NCBI GenBank assembly: GCA_033442325.1
Contig: JAWQFM010000014.1
Location: forward strand, 571,312 to 635,311
Direction of reading: 5' to 3'
From: Salpingoeca rosetta
Lineage: Eukaryota; Protista; Choanoflagellata
DNA: 64,000 nt
In this document: positions 42,581 through 52,630 of the stretch, in pieces
Layout of the letters: each line of letters starts with the position of its first letter
How positions within the stretch are numbered: the first letter of the stretch is position 1
Notes under the pieces: generated by a model
The model's database searches: none
Seen by the model: only the letters and a program-made list of their open reading frames with translations
What the model was told of the DNA's origin: nothing
Program-made: the position numbers and the translations under genes

Positions 42581-44415
42581 TCAAGAACTGTTTAGGAGCG
42601 AGTGGATGTGCATGTGGTCAAGGGAAGATGACGATGAGGAAAGAGGGGAGTCGTGTTCGTAAACGCGTGGGTGGTGAAAGTGGCGCGACTGCTCGCGGTG
42701 ATGATGCTTGTGGTGGTAACGGTGTGGTGTTGAGCGAGAGCAACTTGTGGCAGGACGCCCAGCGTTGCCGCCGAAACTGTCTTGCTTGCTCTTTCTTCTT
42801 TCTTCCCCGTCGTCATCGTCATCCTCGTCGGAACCGAGGACGGCAATGAGGAACGCATTGAGCTCCAACTCCAGCTGTCGCTCTTGCTCCACAAGCCTTT
42901 CGCGTTGATCAGGCGTCAGGGCCTTCTTACGCAGCTCGGCCACTGAAACAACACAAGTACAACCGGCAGAGGCATCAAGACACCAAGAAGATTCGTGTCA
43001 GGCTCTCTCGTGCGGGATGCAGCTTGCTGGGGACTAAACCCGAGACAGACCCGCGAGTTTCGCTTCATGAAACCAACGGGGACGACAGGGCGACAGGGTC
43101 AAACAAAACACTGCACAACGACAACACAGGCATGCGCATGCGTGACTGAAGGAGCCAAAGGAGGAGGTCGTGGTGGTGGAAGAGCAACCTGCCCCAAAAC
43201 CCTCCTCCACACACACACACACACACACACACACACACACACACACACACACACACACACACACACACACACACACACACACACACACACACACACACAC
43301 ACAAGCACACACACAAGCACACACAAGCACACACACAAGCACACACACAAGCACACACACAAGCACACACACACACATAAGGGCAACCACACACGCACAC
43401 ACGCAAAAGCAAGCACAAACACAAACACCAGGTATGTTTTGTTTGCCTTGTGATTGAAGGGTGCTCAGCTCTGTGTCGAGAGAGCGGGCCATCTCAGCGA
43501 TGTGTGGGTCTTGATGCAGTCGCCTTTGCTCTTCTTCCGCCTTTGTCAGGGCCGTGCGTGTCTCCTCCAGCAAGCCTGCCGTGCTTGACTGGAGTGCAGT
43601 GTCCCACTCGTCTCCTTGCGACTTCGCTATTGCTGCAGCCGGTGTGCTGGAGAACGCAAGCGTGGTTGGTTGGAGCGTGTTCTGTATCCAGCTTGCCAGC
43701 GCTTGCCCATCCTGACAGCCCCTGGACTGCAATGGTGTGCCGCTGATGCCAAGCTTGTCGCACTTGGACCGCAGTTCCTGCTGAGCCTAACCGTCATGTC
43801 ACAAATGACGAAGGTCACCCGTTAACAGCCAGAGAAAGCACGTTGTCACAAACCCGGGACAGCCACCCGCAACCGCATGTCGTGTGCAAGCGCTTTCCGA
43901 GGCACTTCGCCCACAAAGCATGTGCATGCGCAGACACGCTCTCACTCACAACATCCAAACACTCGTCTGTAACCACTCACAATCACGAACAAACACGTGC
44001 GTGCACACTCACACGTCCCATCACGCTCTCGGCGTACCTGTAATAACTCGGTGCGAAGCTGCTGTCGTTTGAGGTGGAGCCGCTGTCGTGTACGCTGCCA
44101 TGCTGTGTACCGCGCAGCGGTTTCTCGCAGCACACCGGCCGCCTTTGCCAGGCGCTCCCTTGCACTGTGCAGGAACTCCACTTGCTTGGCTTCTGCTTCC
44201 AGCACTGCGATTCGCAGAAGTTGTGAGAATGAAGAAGCAAGTGAGGCCTGCCTGAACCCCTCACAAGGTCGGGCACGGCAATGAAAGATACGGAAGAGGA
44301 GATTGGCGTTCCTGCAGCGCGCACAACTTCGGGATGGAAGAATGTAACTTGTGTCTCTGCAAACAAATAGCACCCACGACTCACATTGCTGTTCGAGGGC
44401 TGCGATATTGGCCAT
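42581..44415 (-). CDS. Hypothetical coiled-coil protein (multi-exon), divergent from the TERB1-like gene
   Basis: Helical exon-like segments (LLRIAVLEAEAKQVEFL..., LLEETRTALTKAEEEQRRL, ELRKKALTPDQRERLVEQERQLELEL) separated by repeat-containing introns. No family recognised. Confidence 0.5.
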
Positions 44416-44641
44416 CCTCGTCTCCTTCTGAATTGCTTTGCCTGTTTGCGTGCACGGCAGGCTGCAGGTTCTGCAGAAACAAGTGTGGTGCTGGTGCTGG
44501 TGCTGGTGCTGGTGCTGGTGCTGGTGCTGGTGCTGGTGCTGGTGCTGGTGCTGGTGCTGGTGCTGATGGTGCTGGTGTGCTACACAGACGAAGAGTGCAC
44601 CAATGCTTGTGGTGTGTGTATGAAGAAGACAAGGCGATGAA

Positions 44642-44655
44642 TTTTGGCGGGAAAA
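44642..44655. promoter_or_regulatory. E2F-type site TTTTGGCGGGAAAA in the bidirectional promoter region; second site TTTGGCGCC at 44954-44962
   Basis: Matches TTTSSCGC (TTTCCCGC on the minus strand). Confidence 0.55.
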
Positions 44656-44962
44656 TGAACACACACACACACACACACACTAATCTTTGCAGGTGTAACG
44701 AAGAAGCAAAGAAGCCATCTCATCGTTCGCTACATGAGCTCGTTTGTGCACTGTGCTCACTCTAATCACACAGATCTTGGTAGCACCAACACATAACCAA
44801 CACACGCCTCCAGTACTTAGACACAACGCCGCAAACACAAAAACACATTGTACCTCAAGTTCCACAGGCGCATTCCCTTCCAGGGTGTCGTCAAATAGTA
44901 TTCACTCGCACCACCGCACACACAAACGGCATACGGCAAAACGCAAGTCGTCCTTTGGCGCC

Positions 44963-50241: not shown

Positions 50242-50895
50242 CCCGGTTGCTGTTTTGATGGATAGTTTGGCCACCTTGCTCTCATGCTTGCTTGTGGGTC
50301 GATGTTGCGGGCTTGTACGCTCTGGTTCGATGGTTACACTCTCTGGCTGTTGTACTGTGTGTTGTACTTGGGGCGTTACACTCGCGGGTCATGATACAAA
50401 AATACAAAGGACAGAAAGGGCCGCTCGGAAAATGTAGACATGTACTGATTTGGACTGGGACCAGGGGAACGGAACAAAGCACACCTGCACACGTGCAGGC
50501 GCATGTATATGCACACGAGCACACAATAGCAGAACATGACCAAGTGTACGGCACGGGCAACAAGGACGAACTGACAGTCTTGAGCATCCACGACAGCATT
50601 AAGCTCACGAGCTTCCGGTGTTGTCGATACTCAAGCCATTGGCTGCCTGGATTGGGTTGAAGAGGCATGTGATTTGTGTTGACAGAGATGGCAGAGTGAG
50701 CAACAAGCGGTCAACGGGTCAAGTGGTCAATGGGTGCGCATCGATAAAGAAAAAAGGGAGTGATCAAGTGAGCACAGTCCTCCTGAGTGGCAGGCCGCAT
50801 CACAACACCAATCAACAAATGAAGCACAAATCACTCTTCCACTGCAGACACAGTATCGCGCACAACTGCGGGAATGCAAGCACCCGTACTCTTAC

Positions 50896-52324
50896 TCACA
50901 AGAGCTTGACGATGGCTGTTGATTGCTGCCGCAGGCGCGTTCGCAGCGTCTCCACCTCGGCTTGTACCTGGGCCTGATGGAGAGAAGGCGGGCAGGGGCA
51001 GATCGCAAATCGCGCACGTATGAGTGAGGGAGGGGGGGTGAGTCGGCAGTTGAGGGAAGGGTTTGGAAAGATGTTGCAGATGGATATGAGAGGCTGAGCT
51101 GACACGATAACACGGCGCATTTCAACCCAACACCTTGAAATGCGGCCAGCATCAGTAGACAACAAAGGCTTACGTGGTAAGAGTGGTAAGCTGCTGTAAT
51201 CTCCTCCAGTGTCTGAAGGAACTCGGCTTCTTGCTTCTTCAACTGCTCCTCGTGCGTCTTCTGCGTCGCTCTGACGGCCTCTTCGTATTGGCCAGACAGG
51301 TCCTGAGGAGCAACAGCAATGGATAAGAAGAAGAAGAGAAGGATACAAGTTGAAAGGCAGCAAGGAAAGCAACGCAGAACACAAGCAAGGGGGCAGACGA
51401 AGCAAATCACCCTTACAAACACACGCACACACCCTTGGTTTAAGCAGACCTGAAATGCAGTAAGAACGACGGCCCAACGCTGTGAATCCTCGAGCAACAC
51501 GCGACGAGAGTCATCGACCCCTTCCTTCGCTTTGAGTTCGTTCAAGCTGCAGACACACACACACGAACACACACGAACACACACGAACACACACACACAC
51601 ACACACCAGTACGCAGGGGCATGGTCGATGAGAATCGGCGAGCGAGACAGAAGTGTGTCTCAACGCAGGTTACACAACACCCCAACACGCTTCCGCCCTT
51701 GCCTCGCTTCAAGCGTACACAGTTAGCTCATCGCACATTCTTTCTTTACCGTTCCTCGACAGCTTGAAGCGAGGATTGCACGGTCTGCTTGAGTGTTGCC
51801 GCCTGTGCTTTACACAGTGTCTCAAGTTTCTTCTTCTTCTGCGGATTCTCGTCCTTCTTCGGCTTGAGTTGCTTCAGGATGTTCTCAAAGTCCCTGAGGC
51901 GCGCGTGTAACAGTGTTTCAGTGAGAGGGCGCGCGCGGGTGTGTGCGAGTGCGGGTGTGTGTGTGTGTGTGAATAAGTGCGCGAATACAGTGCTTTTGCG
52001 TCGCACTCGCTTCTTGACAAACCACCCCCTTTGTTGTACATCTCGCTTTGAGACGTCGTGTGGTAACGTACAGGTCAAAGCCGTTCGCGTCCCCGCTACC
52101 ATCCTGTACATCAGTGTTTGTGGGGGGGGGGCAAGGGATGAGCACAGCATAGGATGGTTTAGATGGTTTGGTGGTCTGATACAAGGATACACACCCAGTC
52201 TCTGCCTGTCACTGTCATCCCTTCCCCAACCCCCCCCCACACACACGTTGGAACTCACACCGCCCCACACACGAACCCGTACCATGGAGGCTTCGTCGTG
52301 ATCCCTCTTCCCGCGCCTTGGCAT
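50896..52324 (-). CDS. Coiled-coil protein of about 175 aa, possibly SYCP3/Cor1-like
   Basis: Six exons join in frame: MPRRGKRDHDEASM|DGSGDANGFDL|DFENILKQ...KKKKLETLCKA...EER|LNELK...W...FQ|DLSGQY...EFLQTLEEI...YH|AQVQAE...AIVKLL*. The gene model is well supported; the family assignment is tentative. Confidence 0.6.
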
Positions 52325-52521
52325 GTTGATCTTGTGTGTGCTGTGTGCTAATGGACGTCGTGTGCTTGCACTCTGTGATATGACACGTCCAACTGTTGCT
52401 GTGATGAATGACGCATAGTACTCGAAGCCCGCGTAACAGACATCACCAAGGCTGCACGCTACACCTCAATCGCAGAGATTACTCGCGCCCTCCTCTCCCC
52501 CCTCCCCTCTTTCATGCACGG

Positions 52522-52630
52522 TTTGGCGCCAAAACCAAACCCTTCCTCTTGCTGCTCCTGGTGCTGCTGCTCGACGTCACATCATGTCGTTTCAATGTGT
52601 ACAAAACTGCCAGGGTTTTTCGCGCCAAAA
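52522..52630. promoter_or_regulatory. Two E2F-type palindromic sites (TTTGGCGCCAAA 52522-52533; TTTTCGCGCCAAAA 52617-52630) upstream of the SYCP3-like gene
   Basis: Both contain TTTSSCGC matches on both strands, 200-300 bp upstream of ATG 52324. Confidence 0.6.

Follow-up and report, generated by a model that had tools for sequence, protein, structure and literature searches.

A TERB1-like gene and its conserved head-to-head partner share a promoter with E2F-type sites in the choanoflagellate Salpingoeca rosetta

A TERB1-like gene of Salpingoeca rosetta (gene B) lies between a divergently transcribed coiled-coil gene (gene A) and a convergent coiled-coil gene (gene C) in the window analysed here, a 64-kb stretch of genomic DNA. 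As judged from sequence, the promoters of all three genes carry strong predicted E2F-type sites that are real and clustered, and genes A and B are a head-to-head pair, conserved in evolution, whose common promoter is short. We propose that the three genes are held off by E2F/DP and released together, most likely at sexual or meiotic entry, a reading to which we assign a probability of about 0.5. The original prediction of an E2F-controlled meiotic mini-cluster is, as a whole, partly supported.

Organization of the locus

We identified three intron-rich genes in the locus and compared them with the public models on S. rosetta scaffold GL832966.1, PTSG_05206 and PTSG_05207. The features are as follows.

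42581-44415, minus strand: gene A, 305 aa in 4 exons, coiled-coil with an acidic and His-rich tail
44415-44385, 44204-44038, 43786-43429, 42942-42581, minus strand: exons of gene A
44416-44962: shared divergent A/B promoter and spacer, 547 bp, containing a (GCTGGT)n microsatellite
44643-44654: E2F-type site TTTGGCGGGAAA, between the ATGs of A (228 bp away) and B (320 bp away)
44954-44961, plus strand: E2F-type site TTTGGCGC, ending 1 bp short of the gene B ATG
44963-50241, plus strand: gene B (PTSG_05206), 11 exons, TERB1-like, 761-783 aa
44963-45068, 45346-45491, 45602-45673, 45921-46017, 46218-46387, 46772-46886, plus strand: exons 1-6 of gene B
47113-47176 (or -47224), 47494-47555 (or -47573), 47699-47787, 47970-49225, 50133-50241, plus strand: exons 7-11 of gene B
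49164-49225, plus strand: first half of the Myb domain, at the end of gene B exon 10
49226-50132, plus strand: gene B intron 10, GT..AG borders, long CT/GTCT microsatellites
50133-50241, plus strand: second half of the Myb domain and stop codon, gene B exon 11
50647-50899, minus strand: optional 3' intron of gene C, with a GTGAGT donor overlapping the stop codon
50896-52324, minus strand: gene C (PTSG_05207), 6 exons, 173 aa, coiled-coil
52324-52283, 52103-52072, 51893-51750, 51546-51450, 51302-51174, 50973-50896, minus strand: exons of gene C
52522-52533: E2F-type site TTTGGCGCCAAA, a perfect palindrome 198 bp upstream of the gene C ATG
52618-52629: E2F-type site TTTCGCGCCAAA, 294 bp upstream of the gene C ATG

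Our model of gene A agrees with the public gene call in span and length, and that of gene C is identical to the public protein. Genes B and C converge as had been described, with stops (50241 and 50896) 655 bp apart against a predicted distance of about 650 bp. The 3' UTR of gene C extends to about 50330-50400, near the gene B stop. Three reads from run X14 cross the joint 50645/50899 of its optional 3' intron, minus-strand depth spans 50324-50679, and the spliced form ends in ...KLLQPMA. Upstream of gene C lies a gene for an 897-aa protein, with its stop at about 52681 and a poly(A) site at about 52577. Gene A found no match in Pfam, the PDB or the Atlas.

Gene B encodes a TERB1-like protein

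The public model of gene B (735 aa) continues past the 49225 donor, leaving out exon 11. An assembly gap (49764-49863) falls within intron 10, with CT/GTCT microsatellites on both sides, and this intron interrupts the C-terminal Myb domain; the public PTSG_05206 is thus cut off at the gap and is missing half of its sole recognisable domain. Spliced in frame at a CG|G Arg codon, exons 10 and 11 encode a complete Myb domain, which exceeds two Pfam gathering scores (28.2 bits vs 22.9, and 26.6 vs 24.4). On its own, exon 11 scored 13.4 bits with Myb_DNA-bind_6, and exon 10 had no Pfam match. An orthologue on a marine metagenome contig from an uncultured relative (L003) has a gap-free intron of 133 bp that matches intron 10 in codon and phase, and a few plus-strand RNA reads cover exon 11.

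The original prediction called gene B TERB1-like, and sequence and structure-model comparisons support that call. The predicted protein consists of a helical-repeat (ARM/HEAT-like) N-terminus, a disordered linker and a Myb domain at the extreme C-terminus. An AF2 model of the N-terminal 340 aa is an all-helical solenoid of 19 short helices, at low confidence (pLDDT 56), and an Atlas model of residues 17-340 aligned with ARM/HEAT proteins over 250-300 residues at TM 0.58-0.65, values that speak to fold class only. The best single-domain PDB match of the Myb was 1X58 (25.6 bits, ungapped over 50 aa), which is the MYB domain of mouse TERB1 (PMC8867601, PMC7227075), and 1X58 was the top PDB match overall for the Myb of the L003 orthologue (31.4 bits, E 1.8e-6). 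TRF1 and TRF2 came next, with lower scores and alignments ending before the recognition helix.

The likeness to TERB1 (CCDC79) extends to the order of parts, with an N-terminal helical-repeat region of about 340 aa, a disordered linker and a single C-terminal Myb, and to overall length (761-783 aa vs 768 aa in the mouse). In published TERB1 the ARM region spans residues 16-384 and the MYB 715-747 (PMC7227075). The two Myb domains share an F in place of the first Trp, a GVK..G..W.SIL motif, a longer loop between helices 2 and 3 and a Y in the recognition helix, and both recognition helices lack the K-D-R DNA-contact residues of the telomeric TRF Myb.

Gene B differs from TERB1 in having an ARM region with no sequence similarity detectable by single-sequence HMMER. 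A phmmer search with residues 1-340 against 1.84 billion proteins returned, at E <=1e-3, the protein itself and two exon fragments and no metazoan TERB1, and the Atlas feature search named other ARM families rather than TERB1. No TERB2-binding or TRF1-binding segment was recognised in PDB searches: the TERB1 T2B (PDB 6J07) and TRF1-binding peptides in the PDB were matched by neither the P0002 query nor the L003 linker. An FPTSRTF motif is conserved in the linker of both orthologues. The host, a choanoflagellate, is a further difference: the literature dates TERB1 to the metazoan ancestor and describes TERB1-TERB2-MAJIN as a metazoan invention (PMC7227075).

A conserved gene pair around an E2F-type site

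On the L003 contig the orthologues of A and B are also arranged head-to-head, and they keep the exon lengths and intron phases of the S. rosetta genes. Their spacer is 168 bp long, and the only sequence of at least 9 bases that it has in common with the S. rosetta spacer is the E2F-type site, where the 13-mer TTGGCGGGAAAAT at 44643 is identical. The L003 spacer carries an inverted pair of E2F-type elements, TTGGCGGGAAAA and TTTCCCGCCAA, midway between the orthologous ATGs. In L002, from a more distant AT-rich relative, no E2F 8-mer occurs within 500 bp upstream. Because the 44643 site is a phylogenetic footprint, we regard gene A as a linked partner of gene B that is probably, judging by this sequence conservation, under the same E2F control.

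The four E2F-type sites that had been predicted, two strong ones upstream of each of the two meiosis-like genes, were all found: the A/B promoter and the gene C promoter each hold two TTTSSCGC-type sites near the transcription start. The site that had been placed at 44642, between the TERB1-like and the coiled-coil gene, occupies 44643-44654, and its opposite strand holds TCCCGC. The TTTGGCGCC of the 44954 site is common to a site in the gene C promoter. For gene C, the 52522 site is about 60-90 bp upstream of the start of RNA coverage, and the 52618 site falls in the 3' UTR of the 897-aa gene located upstream.

Could these motifs be non-functional, GC-rich palindromes that arise by chance in CpG-containing promoters? 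Across the window the 8-mer TTTSSCGC is only modestly enriched (14 occurrences vs 8.3 expected, 1.7-fold), and three of 100 shuffled windows reached the observed count. At least three other 8-mer sites (2935, 36563 and 37139) are inside long open reading frames and outside promoters, another (46094) within a gene B intron, and a further one (53081) within a coding exon of the neighbouring gene. Against chance stands the clustering of the longer motif: the 12-mer TTTSGCGCSAAA with at most one mismatch occurs three times in 64 kb vs 0.44 expected, and all three are within these two promoters. Four of the 12 distinct 8-mer sites fall within 903 bp that make up 1.4% of the window, with a Poisson P of about 6.5e-6, calculated post hoc. 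We estimate the chance of an exact 13-mer being kept in an otherwise unalignable orthologous spacer at about 0.003. We therefore disfavour the chance explanation and consider it very improbable.

Gene C and the SYCP3 label

The label of gene C as SYCP3-like is not confirmed and amounts to a language-model lead. The match to Pfam Cor1 (PF04803) scored 13.7 bits (E 0.079) vs a gathering score of 32.1, was outranked by four unrelated helical families, and lay amid coiled-coil noise, out of register with the full-length alignment. No SYCP3 chain was found in the PDB at E <=10, and sequence searches found neither relatives nor an orthologue. Comparisons of fold were uninformative: Foldseek found nothing, and the VIA matches were all long helices of a generic kind, tied at Z 7-8. 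In the Atlas the SYCP3 cluster ranked second at 0.88, below the tool's 0.9 line, with 180 of 256 features shared. The AF2 monomer has a disordered N-terminus and helices at 42-79 and 83-172. SYCP3 is a lateral-element protein of the synaptonemal complex whose helical core forms an antiparallel tetramer and fibres. Gene C resembles it in its small size, basic disordered N-terminus and long helical core, and differs in falling under the Pfam gathering score for Cor1 and in lacking a match to SYCP3 structure sequences.

With this identity unconfirmed, gene C could be an unrelated neighbour of a true E2F-controlled A/B unit, its palindromes and its convergent position at 655 bp implying no shared function and the three genes no mini-cluster. 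S. rosetta genes are densely packed, about one to every 3 kb, so any gene has near neighbours; one of the gene C sites lies inside another gene's 3' UTR; and no gene C orthologue was found that would show a conserved linkage of B and C or conserved gene C sites. The synteny check on the original prediction was borne out for the adjacency of A and B in the L003 relative and found no counterpart of gene C. We nevertheless think it unlikely that gene C is an unrelated bystander: both perfect TTTSGCGCSAAA matches of the 64 kb lie within its 356-bp upstream region, its expression is as low as that of gene B, and the features it has in common with the SYCP3 cluster point the same way.

Proposed E2F-type control and its likely timing

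The three RNA-seq runs sampled, all from one study, show almost no expression of genes B and C, with depths of 0-5 vs 24-74 for the neighbouring gene. We suggest that an E2F/DP dimer may occupy the predicted sites, probably together with a pocket-protein, DREAM-type or E2F6-like co-repressor. Genes A, B and C would then be held off in vegetative cells and released jointly at a defined transition, most likely sexual or meiotic entry if gene B is a telomere-to-nuclear-envelope adaptor like animal TERB1. Gene A would be a co-regulated partner of B, and gene C may be a small chromosome-axis-type coiled-coil protein, an identity for which there is only a lead. For the prediction that the coiled-coil gene is a third member of the cluster, the conserved A/B pair with its shared E2F-type site in L003 upholds the linkage; meiotic co-regulation would be a further step.

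E2F sites are a classic mark of G1/S genes, and for this reason they do not by themselves imply meiotic timing; they fit ordinary cell-cycle control equally well. Under such control, activator E2F and release from Rb would drive periodic G1/S or S-phase expression of A, B and C, which might be telomere, chromatin or spindle factors needed at every division. Gene B would then encode a Myb protein associated constitutively with telomeres and not a meiosis-specific adaptor. The canonical G1/S element has the form of these sites, and genes A and C have no assigned identity. The Myb of TERB1 is itself a member of the telomeric TRF-like Myb group, and TRF1 and TRF2 are the next-best matches. The near silence of B and C in cultures in which a neighbouring gene is well expressed argues against this reading, as do the gene B recognition helix, which is TERB1-like and not TRF-like, and the N-terminus of gene B, a 340-aa solenoid vs the TRFH bundle of about 200 aa. 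We consider ordinary cell-cycle control possible, if somewhat unlikely, and prefer joint release at sexual or meiotic entry.

Two known systems offer comparisons for such joint release. In mammals, E2F6/DP1 recognises TCCCGC and acts as a repressor of germline genes (PMC12435664). As in E2F6/PRC1.6 and DREAM repression, putative meiotic genes that stay silent in ordinary cultures have E2F-type sites near their starts, the TCCCGC core among them. The S. rosetta promoters differ in having neither an E-box (CACGTG; MGA/MAX) nor a CHR (TTYGAA; LIN54) partner element, and unicellular S. rosetta has no germline/soma split. Bidirectional E2F-regulated cell-cycle promoters are likewise similar in their short spacer (168-547 bp for A/B) with central inverted sites serving both genes, but the target genes here are not known to act in replication or mitosis and show hardly any expression in cultures. 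The meiotic timing, a role of E2F6/PRC1.6 or DREAM and the co-expression of A, B and C are our inference.

Implications for the origin of meiotic telomere attachment

A choanoflagellate protein with the architecture of TERB1 and a TERB1-type Myb would move the origin of the meiotic telomere adaptor to before animals. A broader reading, in which E2F sites already silenced meiotic chromosome genes before animals arose and a TERB1 orthologue, its partner A and an SYCP3-like axis protein are kept off in vegetative cells and released together at meiosis, is tentative and somewhat doubtful; if true, it would make gene A a candidate new component of telomere attachment. As a conserved head-to-head neighbour, gene A is in any case a concrete candidate for a protein that functions together with gene B. 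The conserved E2F-type sites also raise the question of whether the germline and meiotic repression exerted by the animal E2F family could derive from a more ancient switch by which unicellular organisms passed between vegetative and sexual states. S. rosetta would offer a genetically tractable unicellular system for the study of a meiotic telomere adaptor.

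Gene organization and E2F-type sites

The window corresponds to scaffold GL832966.1 of Salpingoeca rosetta, and the interval 42581-52324 holds three genes, for which splice models were built by hand. These genes and the E2F-type sites beside them are as follows:

Gene A, minus strand, 4 exons, 305 aa; span and length agree with the public gene call
44963-50241, plus strand, gene B (PTSG_05206), 11 exons; TERB1-like candidate
Gene C (PTSG_05207), minus strand, 6 exons, 173 aa; hand-built model identical to the public protein; SYCP3-like candidate
44643-44654 and 44954-44961, E2F-type sites in the spacer between genes A and B
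52522-52533 and 52618-52629, E2F-type sites upstream of gene C

Genes A and B lie head-to-head with 547 bp between them, and the product of gene A has a coiled coil at its N-terminus and, after it, a tail that is acidic and rich in His. Genes B and C converge. The original prediction placed their stops about 650 bp apart, and the splice models bear this out with a stop-to-stop distance of 655 bp. A (GCTGGT)n microsatellite occupies the A/B spacer at about 44490-44570, and most introns of the three genes carry long (CA)n, (GT)n or (CT)n tracts. Downstream of gene A, the public call places a minus-strand gene of 1320 aa at about 39460-42089, with protein-kinase motifs of the CMGC/DYRK-like kind.

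All four E2F-type sites predicted upstream of the two meiosis-like genes are present where they had been placed. The 8-mer TTTSSCGC is only modestly enriched across the window (14 occurrences against 8.3 expected), and four of the 12 distinct 8-mer sites fall within 903 bp (Poisson P ~6.5e-6, computed post hoc). For the longer 12-mer TTTSGCGCSAAA, with at most one mismatch allowed, the 64 kb hold three matches where 0.44 would be expected, and the two promoters contain all of them. Elsewhere, at least three 8-mer sites (2935, 36563 and 37139) are inside long open reading frames, an intron of gene B holds the site at 46094, and a coding exon of the neighbor upstream of gene C holds that at 53081. 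E-box and CHR elements are absent from both promoters. The site at 52522 lies about 60-90 bp upstream of the start of gene C RNA coverage. The low-complexity upstream gene (897 aa, minus strand, stop at about 52681) has a poly(A) site at about 52577, placed by the T-run loose ends of RNA reads, so the second site, at 52618, falls in that gene's 3' UTR. Between these two sites is a CRE-like CGACGTCA at 52572-52579.

A corrected model of gene B across an assembly gap

A run of Ns at 49764-49863, flanked by long CT/GTCT microsatellites, interrupts the last gene B intron (49226-50132); the gap was caused by one of the intronic microsatellite tracts. The public PTSG_05206 model (735 aa) continues past the donor at 49225 and takes its C-terminal end from intron sequence (…CVLTSCLAC). 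Lacking exon 11 beyond the gap, it is missing half of a Myb domain encoded at 49164-50241. Exon 10 by itself has no match in Pfam and exon 11 by itself reaches 13.4 bits with Myb_DNA-bind_6. Joined at a split CG|G Arg codon, the two exons encode a complete Myb domain whose Pfam scores are above the gathering threshold in both cases (28.2 bits versus 22.9, and 26.6 versus 24.4). An orthologue on L003, a marine metagenome contig, has a gap-free intron of 133 bp at the identical codon and in the identical phase. Because the joined Myb domain is complete and the L003 intron interrupts it in the same way, we conclude that the sequences flanking the gap belong to one gene, read in frame. The best current model, combining the public splice sites with exon 11, has a predicted length of 761 aa. 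A first splice choice for exons 7-8, giving 783 aa, is probably inferior to the public one, which uses better donors and agrees with the place where the L003 exon ends. We consider the corrected gene model across the gap to be a solid result.

The promoter shared by genes A and B is conserved

A full HMMER scan with the N-terminus of gene B recovered only the query itself and two short exon fragments, which led to marine metagenome contigs L002-L010. L003 (4866 bp, GC 0.53) carries a compact gene B orthologue in which exon 2 has the same length as in S. rosetta (146 nt), exon 3 is shorter by one codon and exon 4 by two with phases unchanged, and the Myb domain is interrupted at the same position. 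The same contig has an orthologue of gene A (tblastn E 1.5e-5 by default, 3.5e-8 without composition-based statistics), with exon 1 and 2 phases as in S. rosetta, head-to-head with the gene B orthologue. Their 168-bp spacer contains the inverted pair TTGGCGGGAAAA / TTTCCCGCCAA, halfway between the two ATGs. Words of at least nine bases common to the two species' spacers occur only within the E2F site, including the 13-mer TTGGCGGGAAAAT, for which we estimate the chance of sharing at about 0.003. The E2F site is a phylogenetic footprint, which indicates that the A/B pairing and the site are under selection. That the putative bidirectional A/B promoter is conserved, with the E2F site as its only conserved element, is a solid result of the sequence comparison.

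A more distant gene B relative is encoded on L002 (Logan SRR14727191, 1-3574), an AT-rich contig (GC 0.34) whose exons match gene B residues 32-85 and 140-235. It has no gene A match, and the 500 bp upstream of the gene B relative contain no E2F 8-mer. A profile of gene B exon 5 found no match in a JGI metagenome scan. For gene A, an Atlas search with exon 3 gave no usable match and comparison of its exons with the PDB gave only noise.

Gene B encodes a candidate TERB1 homolog

The N-terminal 340 residues of gene B form an all-helical solenoid by Atlas feature search and AF2 model, and the Myb domain is at the extreme C-terminus. Published TERB1 has ARM repeats at 16-384 and a MYB domain at 715-747 (PMC7227075), and the gene B product is alike in overall layout and size. 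PDB entry 1X58 is the MYB domain of mouse TERB1 (PMC8867601, PMC7227075). When the two 56-aa Myb peptides were used as queries against the PDB, 1X58 was the best single-domain match of the S. rosetta peptide (25.6 bits over 50 ungapped residues; next single domain 18.9 bits) and the first match overall of the L003 peptide (31.4 bits, E 1.8e-6; TRF1 23.2 bits, TRF2 about 18). The recognition helices line up as LMKRYD (S. rosetta), LCMRHK (L003) and LAHKYH (TERB1), and we take the corresponding TRF motif to be LKDRWR. Constructs A712K, H713D and H716R (PMC8867601) suggest that TRF proteins have K, D and R at the equivalent positions. From the alignment, we infer that the S. rosetta and L003 proteins, like TERB1, do not have the canonical contacts to telomeric DNA.

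Three results count against this identity: no metazoan TERB1 was found with the gene B ARM region by HMMER at E up to 1e-3, no match to the TERB1 T2B peptide was found, and Atlas names other ARM families for the N-terminus. Pfam gave nothing usable with single exons and only sub-threshold noise with both halves of PTSG_05206; phmmer against the PDB returned nothing relevant for PTSG_05206. Foldseek on the AF2 model and Atlas shape searches recovered only generic solenoids or long helices. We put the probability that gene B is homologous to TERB1 at roughly 0.55-0.6. The presence of a TERB1-type Myb protein outside animals is itself a solid result.

The disordered linkers of the two orthologues are otherwise divergent but keep a PLP..FPTSRTF motif (about 48150-48190 in the window, about 4200-4240 in L003), which may serve in partner binding or be phosphorylated. 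Compared with its L003 counterpart, the S. rosetta linker has about 300 aa more.

The SYCP3-like identity of gene C is not confirmed

PTSG_05207 scores 13.7 bits with Cor1, the Pfam family of SYCP3 (PF04803), against a cut-off of 32.1 and below better-scoring unrelated helical families. We rejected this match as support: residues 112-167 align to profile positions 22-77 of 132, and the remainder would overrun the end of the protein. Compared by eye, it is also out of register with a full-length alignment. Phmmer matched none of the SYCP3 chains in the PDB. A word-index search returned only PTSG_05207 itself, a JGI metagenome scan gave no match, and none of the searches yielded a gene C orthologue. 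The AF2 model has a disordered N-terminus followed by two long helices, for which Foldseek and VIA found nothing specific, only generic long helices. The sole positive is an Atlas feature search, a lead by the tool's own grading, in which an SYCP3 cluster came second (0.88, 180 of 256 features in common) and nine of the ten best family-bearing matches belonged to the same family or clan as the best one. Homology of gene C to SYCP3, as had been proposed, is possible but less likely than not.

Expression and the meiotic repression model

Three stranded RNA runs were sampled, with about 25% of each read. Depth was 0-5 over gene C exons and about 1 or less over the last exon of gene B, versus 24-74 at the 3' end of the upstream neighbor. 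Under the conditions of these runs, genes B and C are nearly silent. This fits repression and provides no evidence for co-regulation. Plain cell-cycle control is a rival reading of the E2F sites. At its 3' end, gene C has an optional minus-strand intron (50647-50899) whose GTGAGT donor overlaps the stop codon; three reads join 50900 to 50646, and the spliced form encodes an alternative C-terminus, …KLLQPMA. The gene C 3' UTR ends about 100-150 bp from the gene B stop, such that the convergent transcripts nearly abut.

Literature searches on the locus tags, or on E2F with choanoflagellate meiosis, returned nothing specific. The original prediction was of a linked, co-regulated meiotic module with gene A as a candidate third member. 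Its observations hold, and conservation of the A/B pair and E2F site on L003 supports part of its interpretation, but it is still a hypothesis that gene C is SYCP3-like, that B and C form a cluster and that the genes are co-regulated in meiosis. Since mammalian PRC1.6 has an E2F6/DP1 arm that recognizes TCCCGC and silences germline genes (PMC12435664), the theme of E2F repression of meiotic genes is coherent. In S. rosetta, however, support extends only to the presence of the E2F sites, to the A/B unit and to the Myb domain of TERB1 type.
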